Of a stretch of 64,000 bases of DNA, positions 17,250 to 55,565 are shown piece by piece (position 1 is the first letter of the stretch; each line of letters opens with the position of its first letter). The position numbers and the translations under genes were made by a program. The notes below the pieces were generated by a model. It saw only the letters and a program-made list of their open reading frames with translations. It did not search any database and had not been told where the DNA came from. Origin of the DNA: Ostrea edulis (taxonomy: Eukaryota); NCBI RefSeq assembly GCF_947568905.1, contig NC_079168.1, positions 71,362,001-71,426,000 on the forward strand, given 5' to 3'.

Positions 17250-17871
17250 TTAATTTGGATGATGGTATTGGTCACTGTACTGACCAATCTCTCCGTGATC
17301 ATCAACCACATCGTCATCCCTGTCTGCACTCTCGCTGTAGGGATCCAAAGCCGATGATGTTTCTTTTAGAGGCTTTTCCTTGAGACTTTGTGGTGTTTCA
17401 TGTCGTGTGTCATAAGGCTGACCTTTCGTAAAATCTGATACAATGTTATTTGCCTGCAAATTCAAAAAGATACATGTACTAGTACTCATCGGTTTCTCAC
17501 CATTAAATTATTGCATAGAAAGCTCTTTTCTATCCAAATCCATTAGCGAAATAAGTGATACTATGCACATGCAACACATGCTGACTGTTCACGTACCCAA
17601 ATATAAAAAGTACCGCATCCGGCGCTGGTTGCGTGCGCCATATCCTCGTTATACGGTTTCAAAATATGTGCCGCCATGTTGATAGAGTTTTCCTCGATGT
17701 TTACCTTATCAAATTTCCTAACCAGGGTTATCAGAGCCTTTTTCCCAGATCTCCACATCAAATACTGAATATCCATCCAATCCTTCAATACACACAATAA
17801 ATTCTAAACTTACCTGTAGATACCACATTCAGAAAAAAGATATGTACACTGTTTTTTATTTTATATATATA

Positions 17872-17916
<45 letters not shown>

Positions 17917-18072
17917 AAATTGTGTTTTTAAAAAAAAATCACAGTGTCCGGTATAAAATATTAAAAGAAATAGAATAAACAGTACACAAAGTTAAAAATT
18001 TAACGCCTGAGGATTATAAAATGAAAGCGCTTGCGTTAAATTTTTAACTTTGTGTACTGTTTATTCTATTTC

Positions 18073-18126
<54 letters not shown>

Positions 18127-18386
18127 TAATGAAAATCAGAATGACACATTCCATAAAAGCAATAATTTACTGCAGCGCTTTCGTCATATCTACATGATTC
18201 ATCAGGCAGTTCAAATATACAAAAATTGTTTAGTAACGTCTTTGTTGTGACGTCAATTAAACGAGTCCTTTATGACATAAAAAACGTTAACCGGTAGCGT
18301 TTGGTAATTGTCTACAATTCCGACATATTTTGTAAATAGATGCGAAATTGTTACAGTAGTCCATTTATTCAAATAATAATTTTTAC

Positions 18387-18462
<76 letters not shown>

Positions 18463-21400
18463 CCTCCAACATTTCCTGCCTCTCTCCTAATAACGTGAAG
18501 GTGGCTTTCATTACGTCGTGTACGATTGGTTTCGGTGATTTGTAGTTACGTAGCTCCGAGATGGTGACTTGATTCATTTCCAGAATTCCGTGTGCGTACT
18601 TCTTCGTCTTTCTTAGATCTGCCAACACATCTTCTGCTTTTTGGATGAGCGATTGCAGCTTGTTTTGGAATTTAGAAGACTTTGCATCATAGATACTGTT
18701 CTCCAATGCAGAGAGGTTCCTTCTGTTGACACTGTCTCTTAGTTCTACCACATCAAATTACCACTTACATAATGCAACGAAAAATACATTAAGCTGCCTA
18801 GCTCTACCTTTATTTTCCGTGCAAATCTTACAGTAAGAGGAAATGTTTATGCGCCCTAATATATGTCTTAGTATGCCTTCGCCATGAAATACGGATATTT
18901 ACTCGTACATGCAGTCAATAAGACGTTTTGTGAAACGCTATGTAGCCTAGTCTTATCATCATGAACATGTTTGTGTTTTTGTGTCCTAACATAACAATTG
19001 ACCTTGTCTATATATGTTTCATAAAATTCATGACCTTGACCAAAGCCGGGATAATTACTACACCCTAATGAAAACGTGTTTAGTTCGTTTCAAACTTTAA
19101 ATATTTCACAAGGTGTGATAAACACTAATACTGTTATAGATATCCCAGTGCACGCAATGACTAAACTGCTTTGATCTTGCTAACTTTAATGCACGGGAGT
19201 ATATTTAAAAGCCTAAAATAAAATTAAAATACATAATGTATTTTGTAAGGGACGATAAATACCGTTCATGAATACAATCTTTATATGGTGCATGTACAAT
19301 TCACGACTGTTCAAGGCGATCGGCAGATCCCCCATTGGTTGTGGTAATGATAAATTGAAATACAATGTACACTTGTTGAAACGAAAATAATTACTTTCAT
19401 CACGCAGGTACAAATATGCCACATTATGACCCTTCGGATCAAACTAACTGTAAATCGTGAAATTATGACCCGGCAGACTAAACTGAAACTGTAAATCGTG
19501 ATCCCGTTGAATAAACTGAAAGTAGCAATTAAATCGCGGAATTACGATCCCGTGGTCAAACTTATGCCTGCAGTATATGCATTGCCAATCAACGAATACT
19601 TGTAAAGAAATAAATTTTAAAAACCAGCAAAACGGAAGTAAGTAGGCAATCATTATCTCTCTCTCCATATTCTCAGTTTATTACTCAACAAACCTTTCGA
19701 TAGCTGAAAGTATTGAATTTTATCTTGAGCTCTTTTTATCTCCCCTTTGTCGTCCAAGTCAAACTGTGCAAACTTATTTATGGCTCGCTGAATAACAACC
19801 GGATCTTTTGATTGTAGAGAACCCTGTAGTTGAACCCTGGCTCTCTTCTCTAAAGCTGTCTGTCAAAAAATCATCAATAGTTTTATCTACATATATAATT
19901 GTGTGCATTTAAGTTGGTGGTAAGAAAACAATACCACAAAATGCGGTTAAGACATAATTACCCAAAATATGAATATAAAAAGAAGTAAAATGTTAATATG
20001 GTTCGATTGAGAAAAAATACCTCGTAACTTCGTTGTTTTCTTCCTCCTTCTTTCGCTTCTAGTAAATAATTACAGACATTTTGAAATTCCTTGTCTTCCT
20101 TTCCCTTTGTCTTTATCTGTAGACCATACTCCCCTTTTTGTGAAATTGCTAGTATGATACAAAGCTGATTTCCAACTATCCGCTGTGAAACAAAACTCCT
20201 TAGCTGCTGACTATCCATGGCATGGTGAACTAGTCTACTTTGTACTTGCATCGTTTTCGTCATTGTAAATTTTATTTCCGTTTCTCTTTTACTGTGGAAA
20301 CCAATAACACTGTCGAGATGTGTTTCAGGCTTCAATCCGGCGAGATCAGTTATAAGATTTGGACCAAAACCGACATCCGGATTGCACGGGAAAGGTTTGA
20401 TGTCGTGCCTCGCGTTTTTGCATACAAGCTTGAATGAACACACCCAAGACATATCGTCCCCTTTCAAAATTCCATGAATGTCAATTTTATAAATCCCTGG
20501 ACATGGAAACCGAACACTGAACAACACTTTACCATTCTGGTGTAGCACAGCGACATACTTATCCAACTGGCTTTCGGAGGAAATCGGTGCATCTGACTCC
20601 TCGTCATTATAGAAGAGTTCATATGTTAACATGATGTCATCAATGATGGAGCTTTTCATGGAAATATTACACATTCCGTCCTCAGAATTCAGAACACATT
20701 TTGGTGTACTCAAAATTTTCATTTTATATTCAAAAAAGGAAGGTCTGCAGTAGGGCATCTCTAGAAACTCCTCCTTTGAAATAGGGTTTCTCATAAGCTG
20801 CCACTCGGAGTTGTCAGGGAAACACCGGTAAACGAACTCCTCCGGGTCAGGTAGAAAGTAATAGTCATTAAGTATACTCACGCTCTCTCCAGTGGAGGCT
20901 GGCATCTTCTCACGAACACCCTCACCTTCATATATAGACAGGTCCATTATGTAGGTACATACAAGATTTAACACTCTATGCTTGAAAAATATCAACAGCT
21001 TAAAGCTTACCAAAGAAAATGTACATAAGAATCATAACAAGAGGCCCATGGGCAGCATCGCTCATCTGAGTCACCTTGGCCCATATTTCCCTACATATAT
21101 GCTAGGAGTGAAAGATACATCGCGATGCAGCCGAATCGCGATGTAGTGGTCTCGATTCGATGTTTGATTTATTTCGGGTCTGTTTCGGTTCGATACGGTT
21201 CTAAAACTATAGCACACAGGGTTTTTAATAACACGGCTTCTGATTGGCCAATGGACTTGAAGATTGCCCAATCAACGTACAAGTAGACTTTATTGTATCA
21301 AAATGGACATAGTGGCGTTGAAAAATGCACCTCCAATGTATAAATCGTGGGTATGTCGACACTTCGGATTTAGAACAAGTGATAAAACTGTGGCAACGTG

Positions 21401-23955
21401 TCAAATATGTTTGAAAGATGTAGCCGTGAAAACGAGACGTACTACGAATCTCACATCAGATTTGCAAAGGAAGCATGACATTCATGGATCAAAACTTACT
21501 AAAGTTACTTTTCCAACGTGACGGTAACAAGCGGAACTGACGATGAGCGTCGAGAATCCCAAAAAAGCTGGTACGAGTAAAGATGCTAATTCTCAGAAAA
21601 CGCAGAGATCGGCAAGTAGACAATTGCGTCTTACAGGTGTTTTCAGAGGAAACTTCGGGAAAGATCACCCCCGGGCACAGGCGATTACCAAGGTCATCGG
21701 ATATTTCATTGCCAGTGACATGCGGCCGTATTCTGTGGTTCAAAAGGAAAGTTTCAAACATTTAGTAAGTACTCTTTGAAGAATTTGGTACATGCTAATG
21801 CATCTAATTGAAAATCATCGAATCCAGACTAAAGTATCGAAAATCGAATCGAGAAGGTACTGTATCGTTTCACCCCTAATATATGTATGTAAAACTTTGA
21901 TCCCTATTGTGACCCCAACTTACTCCCGGGGGACATGATTTTTTGCAAACTTGAATCTGCACTATGTCAGGAAGCTTTAATGTAAATATAAACTTTTATG
22001 GTCCAGTGGTTCTGAGAAGAAGTTTTTGATGATTTTCCTTAAATATTTGTATGCAAACATTTGATCCCCTATTTGTGGCCCCATTCTACTCCCAGGGGCC
22101 ATGATTTTACAAACTTGAATCTGCACAATGTCAAGAAGCTTTCATGTAAATCTACTTTCCTGGCCCAGTGGTTCTTGAGAACAAGATTTTTAAAGATTTC
22201 CCTATTTATTTGTATGTAAAACTTTGATCCCCTATTATGGCCCCATCCCCCCCCAGGGGCATGATTTAACAAACTAGAATCTCCACTATGTCAGGAAGTT
22301 TTCATGTAAATTTCAGCTCTTTGGGTCTAATGGTTCTTGCGAAGAAACATTTTTAATGACCCTCACCCTATTTTTGTGATTATCTCCCCTTTGAAAGAGA
22401 CATGGCTCTTCATTTGAAAACACTTGAAAACCCTAAACCCAAGAATGCTTTTTGCAAAGTTTGGTTGAAATTGGTCCAGTGGTTCTAGAGGAGAAGTCGA
22501 AAATGTAGAAAGTTTACAGACAAACAGACATACGAAGGACAGCAGGCTATCAGAAAAGCTCAGTTGAGCTTTCAGCTCAGATGAGCTAATAAAGTCGACA
22601 CAATGTTTAATTAAGATAGATGACCTTTTGCCTCCACAAGAGTCCATTTTCCTGAGTTGTGTCCCACCACTACACGGCATGCCCATAGCGGAAATACAAA
22701 ACGCCAGCCGCCATTGATGTAAACAGCATTCCACATGTTGCGGAGGTTTCCTAGTTCTTTTTGACCGACATCATACCCTGCGCTCTTGGCGAAACCCTGA
22801 ATAATTGTGCAAGGGATCTTTGCCGCTCTGAAATTGGAATTAAGCAACATTGATATTCAAACTCAATTAACGATACACTAGGTATAAACCAGTGCAGTGA
22901 AGGAACCATGGGGTGGAAGAATATGGATACAAAGCGCACGAAAATCTAGAATAACACGATAACGATACAACAATCGAGGTTCTTACCGACAAAGCAGGGT
23001 AAAGAGTGTGGTGTATGAGGATTTTCCCTGTTGCATGCGTCTAAGAATTTCCATCGGTGAATTCAGTATAACATCTGTTGGAAATTTCATATCTCGGACA
23101 TTTTGTCCGACGACCCAGGAGAAAATTGCACGGACCTGCTGGACGTCACGTGTCATTCCTTTAGTAAGTAATTCGGCCAGATCTTCGAATGTGGTGGCAT
23201 CTTCCAAATTAACCTTTTTTGCTCTTTTGTCACCCTCTGCAATGTCAGCAGTTCTTAAAATGTCCGACTTTCTGTTGACTGCCGGTTTAGGTGGAGGGTA
23301 TCCATCTTCAGTTTCAGAAATGTTAATCTGATATAGACATACATAATTCTAATACTACATGTACTATAAACTTGACAATGTACTGTACACGGGAAATTTT
23401 CAGCCCGCATTATTTTCGCGCAAATTCATAGCTCAATATTGAATTAAAACGTCGGTTGTTTACTGTTTGCTTCTTTCTATCTAGATTTGAATTTATAATC
23501 GCCAATTCCTGATATATTTGAAATGAGGGAAAGTAAAACGGGGTTGAAATTTACCGCATATACCAAAATAATATTGAGTACTCTGGATTAACAACCTGTT
23601 GATATATTTGTTCTGCGGACGTCTGTAGATGTATTGTAATGATAGTAGTAAGTCTATAACTGTATCTGTGCGAACTGTAGGCATATTATGATTATTTCCT
23701 ATATTCTATAATTTTTAGAAGGATTTACGGGAGTTGCACCGCCTTTGGTTGAATATTTAGTTTTACAAATATGGTAATTTTTGCCACTTTGTGGTATTTA
23801 ACTCCCTTTGGGGACGTAAGAGGTACAAACTTGGGCTACAACCCCTCCCCCTGAAATTTTATAGTTTTTTATGCTAATGTTGTGATAACTACATGTATGA
23901 CTGTTAAAACTCTAATTCTGCTTACCTTCATTTGATCTATGAATTCAAATGTCAT
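17250..23955 (-). CDS. KY/hillarin-like protein, paralog 2 (~771 aa); first coding exon tentative
   Basis: Exons 23955-23926 (MTFEFIDQMK, tentative), 23327-22987, 22827-22625, 20925-20021, 19859-19694, 18744-18464, 17782-17597 and 17453-17250 (stop). All are GT-AG and in phase, totalling 2316 nt. Motifs GYPPPKP, VRAIFSWV, WNAVYINGGW, LNDYYFLPDPEEFVY. Confidence 0.88.
18000..18039 (+). ncRNA. Hammerhead-like motif forming the loop of a 49-bp hairpin
   Basis: TTAACGC-CTGAGGA-ttataaaat-GAAA-GCGCT-T-GCGTTAA; stem II is weak. Confidence 0.55.
18169..18210 (-). ncRNA. Degenerate hammerhead (cleavage nucleotide missing)
   Basis: Minus strand reads ACTGC-CTGATGA-ATCATG-taga-TATGAC-GAAA-GCGCT-GCAGT. 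Confidence 0.55.
18387..18456. repeat. Compound (CT)n(TA)n microsatellite just inside a paralog 2 intron; other (TA)n tracts at 17861-17893, 18078-18124, 33948-33988, 34502-34536, 35601-35625, 38095-38112 and 49367-49384
   Basis: Read directly. Confidence 0.95.
21036..22593. mobile_element. Helentron-associated non-autonomous element (HINE-like) with ~166-bp internal tandem repeats, in a paralog 2 intron
   Basis: Ends aacaagaggcccatggg...ctca.ctgag and cagaaaagctca.ttgagctttcagctcag.tgagctaa. (CAGA)-like tract near 22517. About 3 repeat units at 21887-22340. Confidence 0.72.
21103..21878 (+). mobile_element. Internally deleted hAT transposon with BED zinc-finger remnant
   Basis: Imperfect TIRs taggagtgaaagatac / gtatcgtttcacccctA; 8-bp TSD atatatgc / atatatgt. 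The ORFs contain WVCRHF..CQIC..TTNLTSDLQRKH and IGYFIASDMRPYSVV. Confidence 0.85.
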
Positions 23956-26119: not shown

Positions 26120-29006
26120 NNNNNNNNNNNNNNNNNNNNNNNNNNNNNNNNNNNNNNNNNNNNNNNNNNNNNNNNNNNNNNNNNNNNNNNNNNNNNNNNN
26201 NNNNNNNNNNNNNNNNNNNNNNNNNNNNNNNNNNNNNNNNNNNNNNNNNNNNNNNNNNNNNNNNNNNNNNNNNNNNNNNNNNNNNNNNNNNNNNNNNNNN
26301 NNNNNNNNNNNNNNNNNNNAAGGGTCTAAGTAAATCTTGTGTTTCATTCCATAGACCAAAAACCATTGGAAGATACACTGTACATATCATAGGAGACGTG
26401 GACCATGTCAATTATCGCAAGAATTATTCAGTCTTTAATTATACCGTATTTAGTTAGTACATTTTTATAAATAGAACGCCGGGGTTTAAATCCTTTGAGA
26501 TATTACACGGGTTCGAAGCTGGAAAGTTGTTACTAATATAATGGTGAAATAGACAGACGTTTATTGGTAGATTCAATCTGATTTTCCGACAACAAAGAAT
26601 AAAATTGAATCAAAGAGAAGTCGATGTATATCAAAAACCAGGCCTTTGTCATAAGGCAAAATACACGGTATTCATAAATGATACATTGTTATGCAGATCT
26701 GGTATGAACACCATCCAAATGAAAGCGTGTTGTCCAATCAATAAGTGGATTTCTCTAATATACACATTGATTTATTCTTCGTTTCGAAAGGTTTCACTCT
26801 TTGGTTACTTTTATAATATTTGAATTTATTTACTGTTTTCATTTGTGGAATACGAATGTCTGTTTCAATTTGTGTAACACATGTACACGTAAATCAATGT
26901 ACTGAAGTATATTACACGCGATATGAAAATCTAATGATATAGTCATAAAGAAATTGCTGGAATTGAAAATTTGAAATAGATTGAGAAATTCAGTTTTTTA
27001 TTAGTGTAATTTTCCCCAAATAAAATTCAAAATAAATGACGCTCACTCTTCCCGCAATGAATGATTATAAAATTAATCGATTCTACATAGCTGTAAAAAT
27101 CGCAGACAAAAGCATCAATGTCAGAACAACTCAATTTTTTAAAAAACAAAATGTAAAACTTACCTCGTAAATTGAAGTGTCGCTGATTTAATCAAGTCAG
27201 CATGCGAGTTACACTTACAACGTTACTAAGCAGCAAATGGGGCGAGCAACATCACACGTCTAGAGTTTGTTGTATTTTAACTAAACGATTAATATTGACT
27301 GTACATCGATTTCTGCCACTGTACTCTGTACAGTTTCTTTGGAGTATTTAGAAATAGTTTTAAAGTGACTTGAAAATAACGATTTTTACCAGTCGAATAA
27401 TAATGTCAGACTTAACGACTAACTTAAATGGGGGAAAAAAAAAAAAAAAAAAAAAAAACTTAAATGGGGGATTTCAAAAAATTATTTTATGAAACAGGGT
27501 CTACGTTCATGCATTTAGAAACTCACTAGTTTATCTCTCAATGACATAGGAATATATACTAATGACTAACAAAAACATATATTTTGTACAAAATCAAAAG
27601 AAACCTAATAAAACTACGTTAGGTAACCGCTTTTAGTGTATAGAAATATAAAAGGAAGAATTGTTGTCTTGCAAGATAATTATTTAATCACCAAAATCAC
27701 AAATTCATGTGCCTATTTTGAGGTTGAAAAGTGATTGGCATCATTCAATACTGTTGTTATTACTCAAATATATACATGTACTATAGAGTAATTTCGATTG
27801 AATTAAATGTTTTGTGACAAAATGACAGTTAATGCCCTTTACGAAGCTGATTCCGAGCGGGTTATTGATGAATGGAAGTAAACAACTTCATTTCGTGTAG
27901 AATGATTTATTTTCGACAATTTCATAACTCTGTACATTAACTGCAATGTGCGAGTGCATGTCTTGCGACGTAATAATGATATTGATAATGAATAAATCAT
28001 TGTGTTTTCTACAAAGAAGTTGTTCATGCATGATGTTCACGAGACACATCAAGAACAAATCTTCTGCAAAGCGAGACTTTCCCTTACAGCATGGGGATAT
28101 TACCAAAGTAATATATTGTATAACTTTTTCTTGTTTACGCGTTTTTCCTCTGTGACATTGAATTTCTACATGTATCTTTGAATACACGTAGTATGAAACC
28201 AGATCTTAATGTAAGAAGTACATCAAAATTCGGTATACAAAAGATTAAAGATTTCGGGATTTTCCTACCAGTAATATAAAACCTTGACAAGCAACGTGAC
28301 GTAATATCTATATTCTGGAAATTTGACACTGGCCGAGGCGGTTCCATTCTTCTCGACCTGCTTGCGAGTACATAGAAAGCCATCGTGCGTGCGAATGAAA
28401 TGCAGGACTGCGATATCAGTTTGTTGAAATCACTTCTTTTAAGACTTTAATGAAAAGACCAAATTAATTTACGTCGCCCTGGTCTGCCGTTAACCGGAGG
28501 TTTGTAATTCAGAGCTCATGAGACCCCCAAATTGTTTACATGAATTTGTTTCTGGTCTTGTCAACTGTGTAACAATAAAAGCGCATACTGGTATTGGAAA
28601 TTGCAAAATAGATACAATTGCCACCAAATCCCATACATTACAGGAAATATTTCTTACCAGTTTTTATTTGTATGTTAAAATGGAAGTGTGGGATCTAAAC
28701 TCCAGGTGTTTGTGTGTGTAAACTTACGTTCGTGTTTTAGTGATTGCAACTTGTGCATGACTGACGCATTACAAACGCCATTCGATGCCACTTATTAGAA
28801 ATTTCAAAACCCCGCCCAAACGCCAGTTCTGAAAAGTCGGTAAAAGCTCTTACACGGATAATAGTCCAATTTTGAATATATACATATAAAAATAACTGAG
28901 GCATAATGATAATGACTGTGTCACGTGGGGAGGATGTGAAACATAACACAGGGGAAATATAAATGTGAAAATAAAACATGAATAGACAATCTGGTTAATC
29001 CTCTGT

Positions 29007-32000
29007 TCATTTCTTTGGTTTTAGGTTCACTTCTGGTGTGGCGGGCGGATCAGGCTCCTTTATCACCTTCTGAATCTGAACACAAAAACAAGAAATATTG
29101 TCAACAAAAACCATCAAATGAATCAACCGTGAATATCCAACAACGACTTCTACAGCATATTCTTTCCGTTTTGCGAATTCTATAATGTTAAAATACATTA
29201 AGCAGGACTAACCCAGCAATAGAAGGAGGCCGCGCCAACACTCGTCTTCCGCACTTCGTTCTCTGTGATTTTCAAGAACATGTTTTTTACTTTGATTTGT
29301 ACCTTTTCAGGCACCTCAGCAAGATTAAACTTTTGGAATCTCTGAAGTAGACTTTTTTTGCCCGTTTTCCTCATCAAGCTTTGAATATACTCCCAAAACT
29401 GCAATCAAAGATGGGTTATTAATCAATGTCATAATGAATTTTTTGAAAATGCTATTCTCAAATTCGTCGGTTAAGATTTACCTGAAGATTTTCCTCTATT
29501 TCCCCTAACATAAGAAAAGTCGCAATCATGACATCGTGGACGACAACTGGTGGACTTTTATAGTTCATCAGTTCCGCTATAATAGGTTTGTTGAGATCAG
29601 GGATCGGATGCTGGAATCCGCGTAGATTACGCAACTCAGCCAGAACTTCCTCTGCTTGTTTGATCAGTGCCGTCAAGCGGTCCATATATTCCGAGCTACG
29701 CGCTATCGATATTGCTTGGACGAGACATTTATCATTCCTCCTGTTGATTGCATTCATTAAAGCTGTTTTAAGAGAAATCAGTGTATGGATAAAACATTGA
29801 AAAATATTCACAATACCACCGATATGGGCTTTAATGAGCGAAAATATCAAAATAATAGGCCTAGGTTAATCATTCTTATAAATACACAGTTAAACATTCG
29901 TGAATGCATTATGGGCCATATAATGATAAAGTGGAATTACTGTACACAGGCTGTAGAAAAAATCGGAATAGGGATTATCTTACTTTGCTTGACTTCCAGA
30001 AACTCAAGTTTAGTGCTGGCCTTGGTGTAGTCCCCGCGGTCCTCTAGTCCAGCATTCACAAACTTATCAATCGTCTCCTTCAGGCGGTCAATATCCTTCA
30101 CCGTGGTGGCATCCTTAATACCCTTCCTCAGTATCTTCTCTCTGGCATTCTGCATCATACAAACATATCGCAACAGCTCTCACTTACACATATTGGTTGT
30201 TCTTTCACCAAGCGCAACATTATTACAAGTGAAAGTCGTTAATACATGTACATTGTACGATAGAGGTCCCTCACCACTACGACTTTAAGTGTCAAGCATA
30301 AGTCAGAATTTGTAACACTTTGGGTATAAAGGGGATTTCGTCTTTATAGGAGTGAAAACCCTCAAATAGGACATACAACAATATACATGTACACGTACAC
30401 ACTAAACAATACAATCTAGATGCGATCTGAAGAACGGAGGTCTTGTGTCACAACAATCTAATTAAAATCAGATCCAAGAATACGCTCACAATCGCTACAA
30501 TATACTTACTCAGAGTATACGGAGCGGATCTAAAAAGTCTGTTTTAATTAGATCGTGTGTCACAACAGACGTTGGTAAGATAGAGAACCCCTCAGCACTA
30601 TGACTTTGGAATGCTATTACATGACCCAAAAATAGCCGTTTTGTTAAATATCATTCAGAGTTATTCAAAACTTTAAATTTTAGAGTATGAAGATTTATTT
30701 ATACCTCCCAGCCTTTCCTTTTTCTGGTCGTTGGTCTTGGATCCTCTGTGCAGATAAGATAATTGCAGATGTTGTTCATTTCTCCCGGGACGTCTTTTTG
30801 CTTACCATAGATTTTGATAAGGTAGTCGCCATGTTGAGGAATTTTACCCATAATGTCAGTCCTTCCGACATTTTTTTTGTAGTAAAATCTCCCTGCTAGT
30901 TCGTTCTCACTCAGAAGTATGTGTAAAAACTTGACTTTTACGGAAAGATATGTTTCTGTCATAAACGTCATGTGAATTTCTTGGTGTGGTTTCATCACGA
31001 TAAGTCCTGATTTGTGAGAGGGGTCCATTATTCCCGCTTTCTGAGCTTCATATGAGTATCCAAGTCCGATCCATGGCGCATCAGGAAAAGGAACACAATT
31101 TTCTCGCGGATTTTCACAAACGAGGCGATAATCCGCAATCCATGGAACGTTCTCACGATCGACATGTCCACCAAATATTGACAGTTTGTACACACCAGGA
31201 ACCGGAAATCTAACGATGAATGTCCAAACATCATCTTCAAAGTTCATGAGGACATATTTGTTTAGCGGCGTTTTATTGTCAAGGTCAACATCAGATTCGT
31301 CGCGTTTGAAAAGCAGATCATAGTTCATTTGCGTTGGGTAGTCCTCGGGCACGCGGAATGATATTTCAACTACCCCATCCTTGTCGTATAAGATGCAACT
31401 TTGTTCTGTGAGAAGCTTTAGACCTAATCGAAAATACGCTTCCTGAAAAAAGGGAATGCGAACGAACCGGTCAAGGTCGTATGGTACAGTTAGTAGTTGC
31501 CACTTTGGGTCGTCAGGCATACAAAAATAAAGGAAATCATGTGGATCGGTAAGGAAAAAGAACTCGTTGATTTTCTGTATTGTCCATCCCTCTGTGTTTT
31601 CCTCGTCGTCATCGTAGGCCGTCCACTTGTCCAATCCAGACTTCCCAATCACCGTCTGACACGCCCACAGTGGATGAATCAACCTCCAGCTGTCCTTGAC
31701 CCATACCACGTTCCACTTGGTTCTGAGGTTGGACAGTGTATCTGAGGTTCCCACTTCGTACCCAGCACTTTTGCATACTCCCTTTATTATAGCACATTTT
31801 ATTCCTGATTTTCTACAAAGGATTGTAATGCGAGGTTGAAAAATGGAGTTAAAACGTCTAATTCGTGTAGGAATTTGGAAAAAGTCCTTGAATACCAAAA
31901 CCTTTAATTGCACCTGTAATTGTAGGATATTTCAAATCATGTTCTTACCTGCAGAGTACGGCGAAAAGCGAGGCGTACGATGCACGTCCCTCCTTGATGA

Positions 32001-32856
32001 GTTTCATAAACCCTCGAGGTGTCTTGACGAGATCCTCTACAGTATATCCGTCCAAGTTCTTGTATTTGGTGGTAGTGATTGGCTGAACACAGAGCCACAT
32101 GAATAGTGCACGTACCTTCTGCATGTCTGTCCGGAATGGCAGAACGAGGTAGTCGAGAAGCTGCTGGAAGGACAAGTCAATCTTAGAAGGAACCTGTAAT
32201 AAAGGGAAAAAAACATACACTCCACAACTATATGGGTACATACACATAAACATCACTGTACTCTTTTTCAATGAATAAGATGACAGATGCGATTCATGTG
32301 GATGAATATTGTGAATGAAGTTGAAAGGTGTGATTTCAAGCAGAGGATTATAGTCCAGCCATAGAACAGTTTGGCGTTTTCCTGGAACTAAGTGGACACA
32401 TTTTGATTGGCTTGCAAAAGAGGTTGGGATCCATTGTATTAATTTTACCAAATTCGCGGAGCAATGCTGATGACAATATAGGTCTTGACGATGGGGATAA
32501 TTATGTCCCTGATACCTTTCTAACGTGCTGGTGTACATCTTTATACTTCCAGTGTTCATAAATATCATCCTTTTTCAGAGAGTTCTGTTTGGGTACGGGG
32601 TAATCCTCGTCTGACGGAAATTCGGGTACGTCTACCTATAATTCAAATTTAGTATATACGAACATTACATTAATTCAAAACTGTATATTTTCACAAGACG
32701 TCGGGTCAGTTCCTTTTTTTATTTTAATTTCAGTGCACGTGATCATTTCAAACAAGGTAATATAATACTTGCCTCTTCATCGTCAGGTTCCCGCTGATCA
32801 CCGGACTTCTGAGATTTGGATTGCCGAGATCCTTGTGCCGAGGAATTGCTACCCAT
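29007..32856 (-). CDS. KY/hillarin-like protein, paralog 3 (~752 aa)
   Basis: Exons 32856-32773 (MGSNSS..., GC donor), 32635-32516, 32193-31949, 31812-30705, 30149-29984, 29762-29482, 29398-29213 and 29075-29007. In phase, 2259 nt. The 166/281/186-nt exons equal those of paralog 2. Confidence 0.9.
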
Positions 32857-33149: not shown

Positions 33150-43347
<10,198 letters not shown>

Positions 43348-53535: not shown

Positions 53536-55565
53536 TGTAAACTGGCATCAAACACGCACCTGTCTGAAAAATAGTTCCTGTAAAAGCCGGTCCAACTGAT
53601 TTTCAAAGACAATGTTAAATAAAGATTCAATATGAGATCTATTAAAATTAATGCAGCGAAAATATATTCTGTGAATGCCTGTAGTAGGCTGATTGATTTA
53701 TCACGTGATCCGAATTAATTAGAAATTCTTTTAATCAATACCATCCTTATTAGTTATCAGTTGGTCTAAATCACGACAGTAAACCATTAACGTTGTNNNN
53801 NNNNNNNNNNNNNNNNNNNNNNNNNNNNNNNNNNNNNNNNNNNNNNNNNNNNNNNNNNNNNNNNNNNNNNNNNNNNNNNNNNNNNNNNNNNNNNNNNNNN
53901 NNNNNNNNNNNNNNNNNNNNNNNNNNNNNNNTTGATTACAGAAATCGTCAAGAAAGGAATGTCATAGGTTAACGTGTGTTTGTCTGATTGTCAGAAATGA
54001 ATATCAGAAGGTTTGTCTGATTGTCAGAAATGAATATCAGGAGAGACAGATTTGGATGTTGTGAACTTCTTAATAGTATATAGCGTATATATTGGAATCA
54101 AAACTACAAGCTCGTATTATTTGCATACTATTCATTGCAAGAAACACGGTGATCTACACAGAGACTGTTTGTGTTGTGACTTAGTGGCAGATACAAAAGA
54201 AGAAACACATTTTTTTAGCAATAAAACTCTTCTGTAAATGAAAACTTCATGGTAGCAAGATTATGTCACCGCTATTTACAAGTAAGATTTTAATATTGAA
54301 CCTGAGCTGGGATAACACACCTGAGTTCTCTGTACGTGTGATTATGATGGAATGTTCTGTTGTAGGTTTCTCTGAGACGTCTCAACGTGCACAGGTGTGC
54401 TAATACCTGGAACAAAAGTACAAAAGATCTTGCACGTTTTGCACAAACATTTCCTTATCATCGATTACCTTTTGCAGTATGCAGAGTTATCGGGAACAAT
54501 AACGCTTGTAAATTTGTAATCGCTACAGAATGCTCTATAAGCTGTATAAACTACATGTATGTAGAAAGAACTATGTATAAAGCTTAACTGGAATTTTTTT
54601 CAATACCGGCGCGCGCGCGCGCGTACACACACACACACACACACGTGTATATATTTAGCGTATATATGATAAAACAATAAATCAAAACATACAACACACG
54701 CAGCCCTGTATTACGGAGTTGGTGAAGGACTGATCTCGATGAACATGCAGTAAGCTATGCAATAAACATTAAAATTACCTTTAAAGCGTATAAGAAACAT
54801 CCACAGGTCCAACGGCCGTTCTGTATCCAATGAAAATAACCTTGTTCTGTCTAATGAAGGTAACCTTCACAGTAGGTTCAGTCTTCCAATTTTGGGTAAG
54901 TAATGAAGAAAATAGTTTCCTCCTTTTGAGGACCAGGTCTCGCCTTTATTTCTGCTTACTTACGCAGACTACACAAGTATTGATTGAAGCAGACGACTCT
55001 AATCGTGTTTGATGAACAGGCCAGTCACCGTATTTTTCTTGTTAAATCCTCGATCACGTTGAATTACCATCATGCATGCATAATTCTGCACTATTTACAT
55101 GCAGGAGTGAATGGAAAAGTGCTTTTAAAGATATAAACAACATTGGACTTTGCCATCTCTGACTTCCAATGGAGTCAGATCACTAAAAAGATAATATTGT
55201 AAAACCTAAATCTACCTATTCATACTCGTCGCTTCAGTTTAAGCCTCTCCAATTTCCTCCTCATTCAATTTAAATTGAAATACTGCTATTCTTGTAATGG
55301 GAGTAATTTGCCTTTTGTGATGTTCACTTAGAGTTTTACAAACCGTTGGTCTCATGAATGTTAATTGAAAATCATTTAAAATTTAAACACCCCGACGGAC
55401 GACGAAAGGCATGATTAGCATGAACTACTGCAGAATAAACAAAGTGCATATATAATATGTGAACCTTGTTGGGGCTGGTGGTCCTTATCGATGTTCGTGA
55501 AGTCATTGAGTGTAGGACTGCTGCAACAGAGCAAAGATAATTTTTTACTTGTTCGGCAAAACAAT

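Follow-up and report, generated by a model that had tools for sequence, protein, structure and literature searches.

To our knowledge, the microtubule-binding domain (MTBD) of dynein is regarded as unique to dynein heavy chains, in which its affinity is controlled through the stalk over a distance of 15 nm. Proteins of the KY, hillarin and Cyk3 type have Ig-like_KY domains (PF23265) preceded by a transglutaminase-like region; those of hillarin type in Drosophila and C. elegans carry a LIM domain, and we know of no vertebrate KY to which either a helical linker or an MTBD-like module belongs. Here we analyse a stretch of 64,000 nucleotides from Ostrea edulis (contig NC_079168.1, positions 71,362,001 to 71,426,000; hereafter the window, whose own positions serve as coordinates throughout), which carries three tandem paralogs of a KY-type gene. 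KY-type Ig-like domains (PF23265) are present in paralogs 1, 2 and 3. These oyster genes differ from KY, hillarin and Cyk3-type proteins in adding a C-terminal helical linker and an MTBD-like module, which we describe chiefly in paralog 2, read on the minus strand.

We conclude with high confidence that this module is a genuine homologue of the dynein heavy-chain MTBD. The domain sits in a non-motor, KY-type protein, where it is conserved, spliced and under constraint. In contrast to dynein, the protein has no AAA+ ring, linker or long stalk, and its upstream exons are KY-like; it is no dynein, and the domain alone is common to both. What is new is the motor-less context of a known domain, in a family that has no description of its own. 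In the literature searched there is no description linking KY or hillarin proteins with a dynein-type MTBD, and the novelty claimed in the original prediction, which had been made from the DNA letters, stands in this respect; it is tempered by a few mollusc fragments that already bear automatic 'dynein stalk' names, and by PF12777 annotation on a minority of fragments.

Homology with the dynein MTBD

The case for homology is a chain that leads from the window exons to a family profile and from the profile to dynein, without a direct match between window and dynein. Annotated homologues were obtained with the 404-residue open reading frame of paralog 3 as query; they include C. gigas XP_011455438.1 (P0003) and a Pecten protein (P0004), both of which contain the spliced module. 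A second search, limited to the module, gave 15 mollusc proteins. Two family profiles were used, A1 from 16 mollusc module sequences and A2 from 53 diverse members. On the window, the A1 hidden Markov model (HMM) scores 121.6 bits on exon A (profile positions 1–93) and 71.5 bits on exon B (positions 94–158), the next six-frame piece in the 64 kb reaching 6 bits. The annotated protein of the window itself is not among the homologues collected, the best of which is 44% identical, and P0003:470-648 is 43% identical to the window module.

The step from the family to dynein becomes clear as the query widens. One homologue compared with the PDB by phmmer gives marginal dynein matches only (E 0.08). 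Profile A1, searched against all PDB sequences, finds dynein heavy chains at the MTBD in 33 of its 35 matches, with a best E of 4.4e-7. For profile A2, which has 65 matches in total, all 60 matches listed are dynein heavy chains, always at the MTBD, and the best E is 2e-10; the dyneins matched comprise cytoplasmic dynein-1 and -2 and both inner- and outer-arm axonemal forms. Pfam points the same way, in that the dynein stalk family PF12777 ('MT') matches five of the 16 family members at profile positions ∼100–210 of 344, which are its MTBD part. A C-terminal fragment of the Pecten protein scores 25.1 bits against a gathering cut-off of 24, whereas the full-length protein, at 21.8 bits, falls below it; that shortfall may explain why the domain has gone unremarked.

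Identity between the module and dynein is 14–21%, and the likeness lies in the order and placing of conserved features. The helices follow one another as CC1, H1 to H6 and CC2 in both, and the profile alignments place the Glu of H1, the Pro after H1, the Leu-Gly that ends H2, the Trp that opens H3 and the S..G..W of H6/CC2 at the same positions in module and dynein, in keeping with the motif order and spacing first proposed for this locus. The module differs from dynein in lacking the axonemal-type flap, in having insertions of 3–4 residues between H2 and H3 and of three residues behind H3, and in missing the basic contacts of H6.

Structure prediction with AlphaFold2 was run on the A1 alignment, the modelled row being P0003:470-648. 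The model (predicted local distance difference test, pLDDT, 87.8; predicted template modelling score, pTM, 0.80) begins with two short helices, continues with a CC1-like helix of 25 residues and six short ones, and closes with a helix of ∼20 residues and a disordered, low-confidence tail. As modelled, the module is a six-helix bundle (H1–H6) held between antiparallel CC1-like and CC2-like helices. The stalk has only ∼3 heptads, and the CC2-like helix ends ∼20 residues after H6, beyond which come the low-confidence tail and the stop; switching of the stalk registry driven by ATP would thus be impossible.

Comparison with solved structures, among which 3err, 5ayh, 3wuq, 6rzb, 6kio/6kjn/6kjo, 6rza and 8i3j are dynein MTBDs, gives a consistent picture. 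The best 50 ranks of a Foldseek search of the PDB are all dynein stalk or MTBD entries, save one radial spoke chain, 7jtk_C. With VIA-align the model superimposes on 5ayh (mouse dynein residues 3282–3404) with Z 17.1 and a root-mean-square deviation (rmsd) of 2.1 Å over 120 residues, on 3err with Z 17.0 and on 3wuq with Z 16.2, the rmsd being 2.0–2.2 Å across these three. Axonemal and yeast MTBDs follow at Z 12.6 to 15.1, and over MTBDs generally the rmsd is 2.0–2.7 Å for ∼120 residues; after them the scores drop to Z 4.7, the top of the unrelated folds. The AlphaFold and Foldseek comparison that the original prediction had proposed as a check, carried out on the homologue model, thus leads to dynein MTBD structures. 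Taken with the profile matches in the PDB and those of PF12777, model Z scores of 12–17 against solved MTBDs bear out the identification of the module as a dynein-type MTBD.

The same fold is seen in AlphaFold DB clusters, in proteins of many invertebrates (TM-score by query 0.65–0.95 over the first twelve rows), and one member of these clusters, a 199-residue scallop protein, has been named automatically 'Cytoplasmic dynein 2 heavy chain 1'. The neighbours in the ESM Atlas are mollusc fragments, 25–34% of which carry PF12777. The ESM Atlas structural list also contains a Dpy-30/GAF cluster from green algae, and AlphaFold DB holds non-dynein kinetoplastid proteins of 515–1058 residues with an MTBD-like bundle (C9ZMJ3, A0A7G2C2B9), whose automatic names include 'antigenic protein' and 'Microtubule-binding stalk of dynein motor'.

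A KY-type gene that ends in the module

Translation of the minus strand gives five consecutive in-frame exons in paralog 2, with GT..AG joints throughout and no internal stop; the frame is open from the KY-like exon (20021–21013) down to the stop codon at 17250. The stretch 20021–21013 is part of a large exon that encodes the KY-type Ig-like domains; of its two boundaries, the RNA joint 19859/20021 sets only the 3′ one, at 20021. It is followed by the helical linker exon (19694–19859), which lies in frame between RNA joints on both sides, connects the KY part to the module and is 42% identical to residues 511–575 of homologue P0008. Exon A (18464–18744) encodes the leading helices, the CC1-like stalk helix and MTBD helices H1–H2, and exon B (17597–17782) helices H3–H6 up to the conserved Trp that opens CC2. 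The last exon, C (17250–17453), has an RNA joint and an open frame, and supplies what is left of the CC2-like helix, which is short, then an acidic tail of low complexity and the stop. Exons A and B, read on into the first five codons of exon C, encode exactly the spliced peptide that the original prediction quoted. The span given for it, 17597–18744, contains exons A and B; the final 'ANNIV' lies just outside, in exon C.

The RNA evidence consists of spliced contigs from two runs, X1 and X2, of a closely related organism whose sequences are 95–99% alike to the window. The contigs skip 17453–17596, 18745–19693 and 19860–20020, and the skipped ends read CT..AC, which is GT..AG on the minus strand. 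The joints seen are 17452/17596, 18744/19694 and 19859/20021; the latter two mean that the linker exon is spliced to the module on one side and to the KY exon on the other. Both contigs also extend 39–46 letters upstream of exon B, letters that cannot be placed on the adjoining intron. Positions of the family profile run without a gap over the A–B junction, and annotated homologues read straight across it. Between the window and these transcripts there are 20 synonymous and 11 replacement differences overall, and in the two module exons six synonymous differences against two conservative replacements (I>F, V>I). To judge from these substitutions, the paralog 2 gene is under purifying selection.

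The upstream part of the gene identifies it as KY-type. The Pfam scan finds PF23265 (Ig-like_KY) on 19958–21013 with E 4.7e-47. Further upstream, homologues from scallop and pearl oyster align through their transglutaminase-like region with the minus strand of 22620–23330, the identity to P0008 residues 30–213 being 37%. The alignment falls in two pieces with approximate boundaries, found by tblastn, one at 22986–23330 (P0008 residues 30–144, 37% identity) and the other at 22620–22826 (residues 145–213). Scanned alone, these split and short pieces give E 0.061 for PF01841 on 22986–23330 and nothing on the other; homologue P0008 itself meets PF01841 at 30.1 bits, and P0004 also meets it. The catalytic Cys and His positions of paralog 2 look substituted in a by-eye reading of the tblastn alignment against the motif of the Cys-His-Asp catalytic triad, a change that would make the protein a scaffold rather than an enzyme. 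No LIM family appears in Pfam scans of P0003, P0004, P0008 and seven long relatives, and the 'hillarin-like' label on these genes is an automatic name. We reject a mis-joining of dynein gene fragments, the upstream exons being KY-like and spliced to the module. The proposal that the module belongs to a non-motor protein is upheld by these joints and by the presence of both Ig-like_KY and transglutaminase-like parts.

Several repeats lie close to these exons. (CT)n and (TA)n microsatellites stand directly 3′ of the exon A donor site, at 18382–18471. The A–B intron holds a perfect 49-nt inverted repeat (17958–18006 and 18033–18081, with a 26-nt spacer), bordered by long (TA)n runs at either end, and depth at 17904–18037 is raised in all four runs, up to 52x against ∼5x over the exons; the inverted repeat at 17958–18081 looks like a multicopy hairpin element of the miniature inverted-repeat transposable element type. 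At the upstream edge of the open frame of the large KY exon, contig depth over 20986–21100 is ∼500–2300x in all four runs, and this segment is probably a high-copy repeat.

Tubulin contacts, proposed function and alternatives

The residues of the yeast MTBD that contact tubulin are E3122, R3124, K3117, R3152, R3159, R3201 and K3204, of which E3122 pairs with R402 of α-tubulin (PMC7042235). We mapped these positions on to the family through HMMER alignments and counted them in the 53 members of A2. The position of E3122 is Glu in all 53, as it is in paralog 2, and is one of only six invariant columns in the family. At the position of R3124, Lys or Arg is found in 57% of members and His in a further 30%; paralog 2 has Arg. 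The residue after R3159 is basic in 83% of members (Arg in paralog 2), and that before R3201 in 70%.

On this basis the most likely partner of the module would be the microtubule lattice, with H1, H3 and H6 making the contact as they do in dynein. A short CC2-like helix leaves nothing by which the stalk registry could slide, and the module would act as a static binding head rather than an ATP-switched one; on microtubules it would tether the KY scaffold to them. Judged from the residues kept, microtubule binding is plausible and could vary among paralogs; paralog 3 retains more basic positions than paralog 2, and the tail of P0003 is strongly basic. As the function of this module we regard microtubule binding as evenly balanced. 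The statement as a whole, that an MTBD homologue in a non-motor KY-type protein serves as a static head tethering a KY scaffold to microtubules, we favour slightly.

A number of observations weigh against this proposal. Several of the basic contacts are poorly kept at their own positions: Lys or Arg is found in 9% of the family at K3117, 21% at R3152, 6% at R3201 and 0% at K3204, where paralog 2 has Gln, Met, Ala and Ala respectively; at R3159 the figure is 34%, and paralog 2 has Trp. The core of paralog 2 has a net charge of 0 and its tail is acidic, which is unfavourable for the acidic microtubule surface. The structural model is of a 43%-identical homologue instead of the window's own protein. 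Single window exons gave no dynein signal in the Pfam scan or by phmmer against the PDB, because they are too short alone, so that the HMMER comparison with PF12777 that had been proposed as a check holds for family members and not for the window's own exons taken singly. The splicing evidence comes from transcripts of a related organism rather than from Ostrea edulis itself, and the A–B joint (18464/17782) is absent from the listed contig joints, because the microsatellite mask spans 18382–18471. No upstream first exon was found for paralog 2, and a search between 23330 and 29200 showed nothing convincing as an MG-type first exon; the missing exon might sit in a gap of undetermined bases (N) at 26120–26319.

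The main rival explanation accepts descent from the dynein MTBD and holds that the domain has been repurposed, to bind, for example, a different filament system, a membrane protein or the KY domain of the same protein, with microtubule binding lost. Half of the salt-bridge positions of dynein are unconserved, the basic residues of H6 have been replaced by an almost invariant S-A-G-A-(A/G)-T-F, and core net charge ranges widely over the family, from −8 to +11, paralog 2 combining a neutral core with an acidic tail. Against such a history, the one acidic tubulin-contact residue of dynein is invariant where so few columns are. Basic residues are also kept at or beside three of the five basic contact positions, and the conserved residues of H6 match dynein's own S..G..W core pattern, which gives them the look of structural residues rather than of a new surface. 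We consider repurposing an appreciable possibility, though clearly short of an even chance, and continue to prefer a static microtubule-binding head.

Convergence, in which a small helical bundle on a helical hairpin would resemble the MTBD without common descent, has in its favour the low identity to dynein and the middling structural scores that helical bundles often reach. Two non-dynein chains do fall between the MTBDs and the unrelated folds, the Chlamydomonas radial spoke chain 7jtk_C (Z 11.7) and the Toxoplasma intraconoidal microtubule chain 9ya2_L (Z 9.6). Both are helical bundles on a helical hairpin, but neither gives a sequence match to the family profile, and their Z scores lie in the range that such bundles reach by arrangement alone. 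The paper on the Toxoplasma conoid contains neither 'MTBD' nor 'microtubule-binding domain', and mentions dynein solely in its reference list. By contrast, profiles built without structure match dynein heavy chains at the MTBD, the best E was lower by three orders of magnitude for the 53-sequence profile than for the 16-sequence one, PF12777 matches family members in return, and a Z of 17 is far above the background of unrelated folds. We therefore regard common descent as the explanation of the likeness, and convergence as very improbable.

Least probable of all is a gene-model artefact or decaying pseudogene, with the module exons outside the KY-like transcript or non-functional: RNA from a related organism only, the unlisted A–B joint, the missing first exon and the 200-base N gap upstream would allow it, but contigs of two runs join exon A to the linker and the linker to the KY exon, the five exons keep one frame free of stops and have canonical splice sites, synonymous changes outnumber replacements, and the same architecture is found in annotated proteins of more than 10 mollusc species.

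Relatives, paralogs and neighbouring features

Searched with the family profile, 1.84 billion cluster representatives yielded 1536 matches at E≤1e-3, of which 614 reach E≤1e-10 and 97 reach E≤1e-30; scaled from the PDB scores, a few of the weakest of the 1536 are expected to be true dyneins. Members come from bivalves, gastropods, the annelid Owenia, the brachiopod Lingula, the hemichordate Saccoglossus, the sea cucumber Apostichopus and amphioxus. Their architectures include KY-type proteins with two to eight Ig-like repeats and many small proteins without a known domain. The KY-type protein P0021 of Pinctada imbricata (1437 residues) has three tandem modules, seen as three matched stretches with a full-sequence score of 555.6 bits; P0051 and P0065 of amphioxus are KY proteins with an added CARD domain, and P0086 of Saccoglossus has a signal peptide, EGF repeats and a transmembrane helix ahead of the module. 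These two amphioxus proteins, P0086 and a small protein of Ostrea edulis (LOC125649579, P0036) share the same module, which the family profile matches at E 1e-25 to 1e-57. In the small relatives of lipid-anchored or transmembrane type the module is usually C-terminal, and cytoplasmic by predicted topology. The difference lies in the N-terminal context, some having no KY part but an MGCxxS start and a low-complexity linker, and others EGF repeats with a transmembrane helix, or a CARD domain.

Among the 171 family proteins that start with Met, 58 begin MG; a myristoylation-type pattern is matched by 55, and in 31 there is in addition a Cys among residues 1–5. A strict hydropathy scan finds transmembrane helices in only 13 of 162 family proteins, and the case for membrane tethering thus rests mainly on sequence motifs of lipidation type at the N-termini. 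Given the many relatives with an MG(C)xxS start of lipidation type, seen also in the first-exon candidates for paralogs 1 and 3, or with an upstream transmembrane helix, the family may link membranes to microtubules.

A broader interpretation, which we put forward tentatively and hold to be somewhat short of even, is that a copy of the MTBD arose from a dynein gene early in the evolution of animals and turned into a mobile domain without a motor. Such a domain would then define a large, undescribed invertebrate family of KY-type scaffolds, lipid-anchored small proteins and transmembrane receptor tails that statically tether membranes or scaffolds to microtubules, a new class of microtubule-associated protein. 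A natural head with three heptads, set on unrelated scaffolds and membrane anchors, would show how the head behaves at fixed registry. The family would add candidate linkers between microtubules and membranes in molluscs, annelids, brachiopods, echinoderms, hemichordates and amphioxus, and would open a way to the function of KY/hillarin-type proteins, which are poorly understood.

Within the window, paralog 3 has its module split between exons at the same profile position as paralog 2. Its exon A (29482–29772, minus strand) scores 85.3 bits with the family HMM and is 46% identical to that of paralog 2; its exon B (29201–29404, minus strand), an open frame piece with approximate splice sites, scores 68.9 bits. 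Paralog 1 leaves the window start after its linker exon (500–655, minus strand), which was found by tblastn at 38% identity to the paralog 2 linker, and its module exons would lie beyond that edge. Candidate first exons were found on the minus strand for both, at 4528–4653 for paralog 1 (start at 4653, beginning MGCGGS...) and at 32746–32856 for paralog 3 (start at 32856, beginning MGSNSS...), each with a myristoylation/palmitoylation-type motif; the candidate start of paralog 1 resembles the N-termini of homologues.

Runs of N occur at 26120–26319 (200 bases, between paralogs 2 and 3), 7842–7984 and 53797–53931. Two open reading frames on the plus strand, one between KY paralogs (6890–7733) and one beyond paralog 3 (35916–36986), read, to judge from their translations, like transposases of the Tc1/mariner type.

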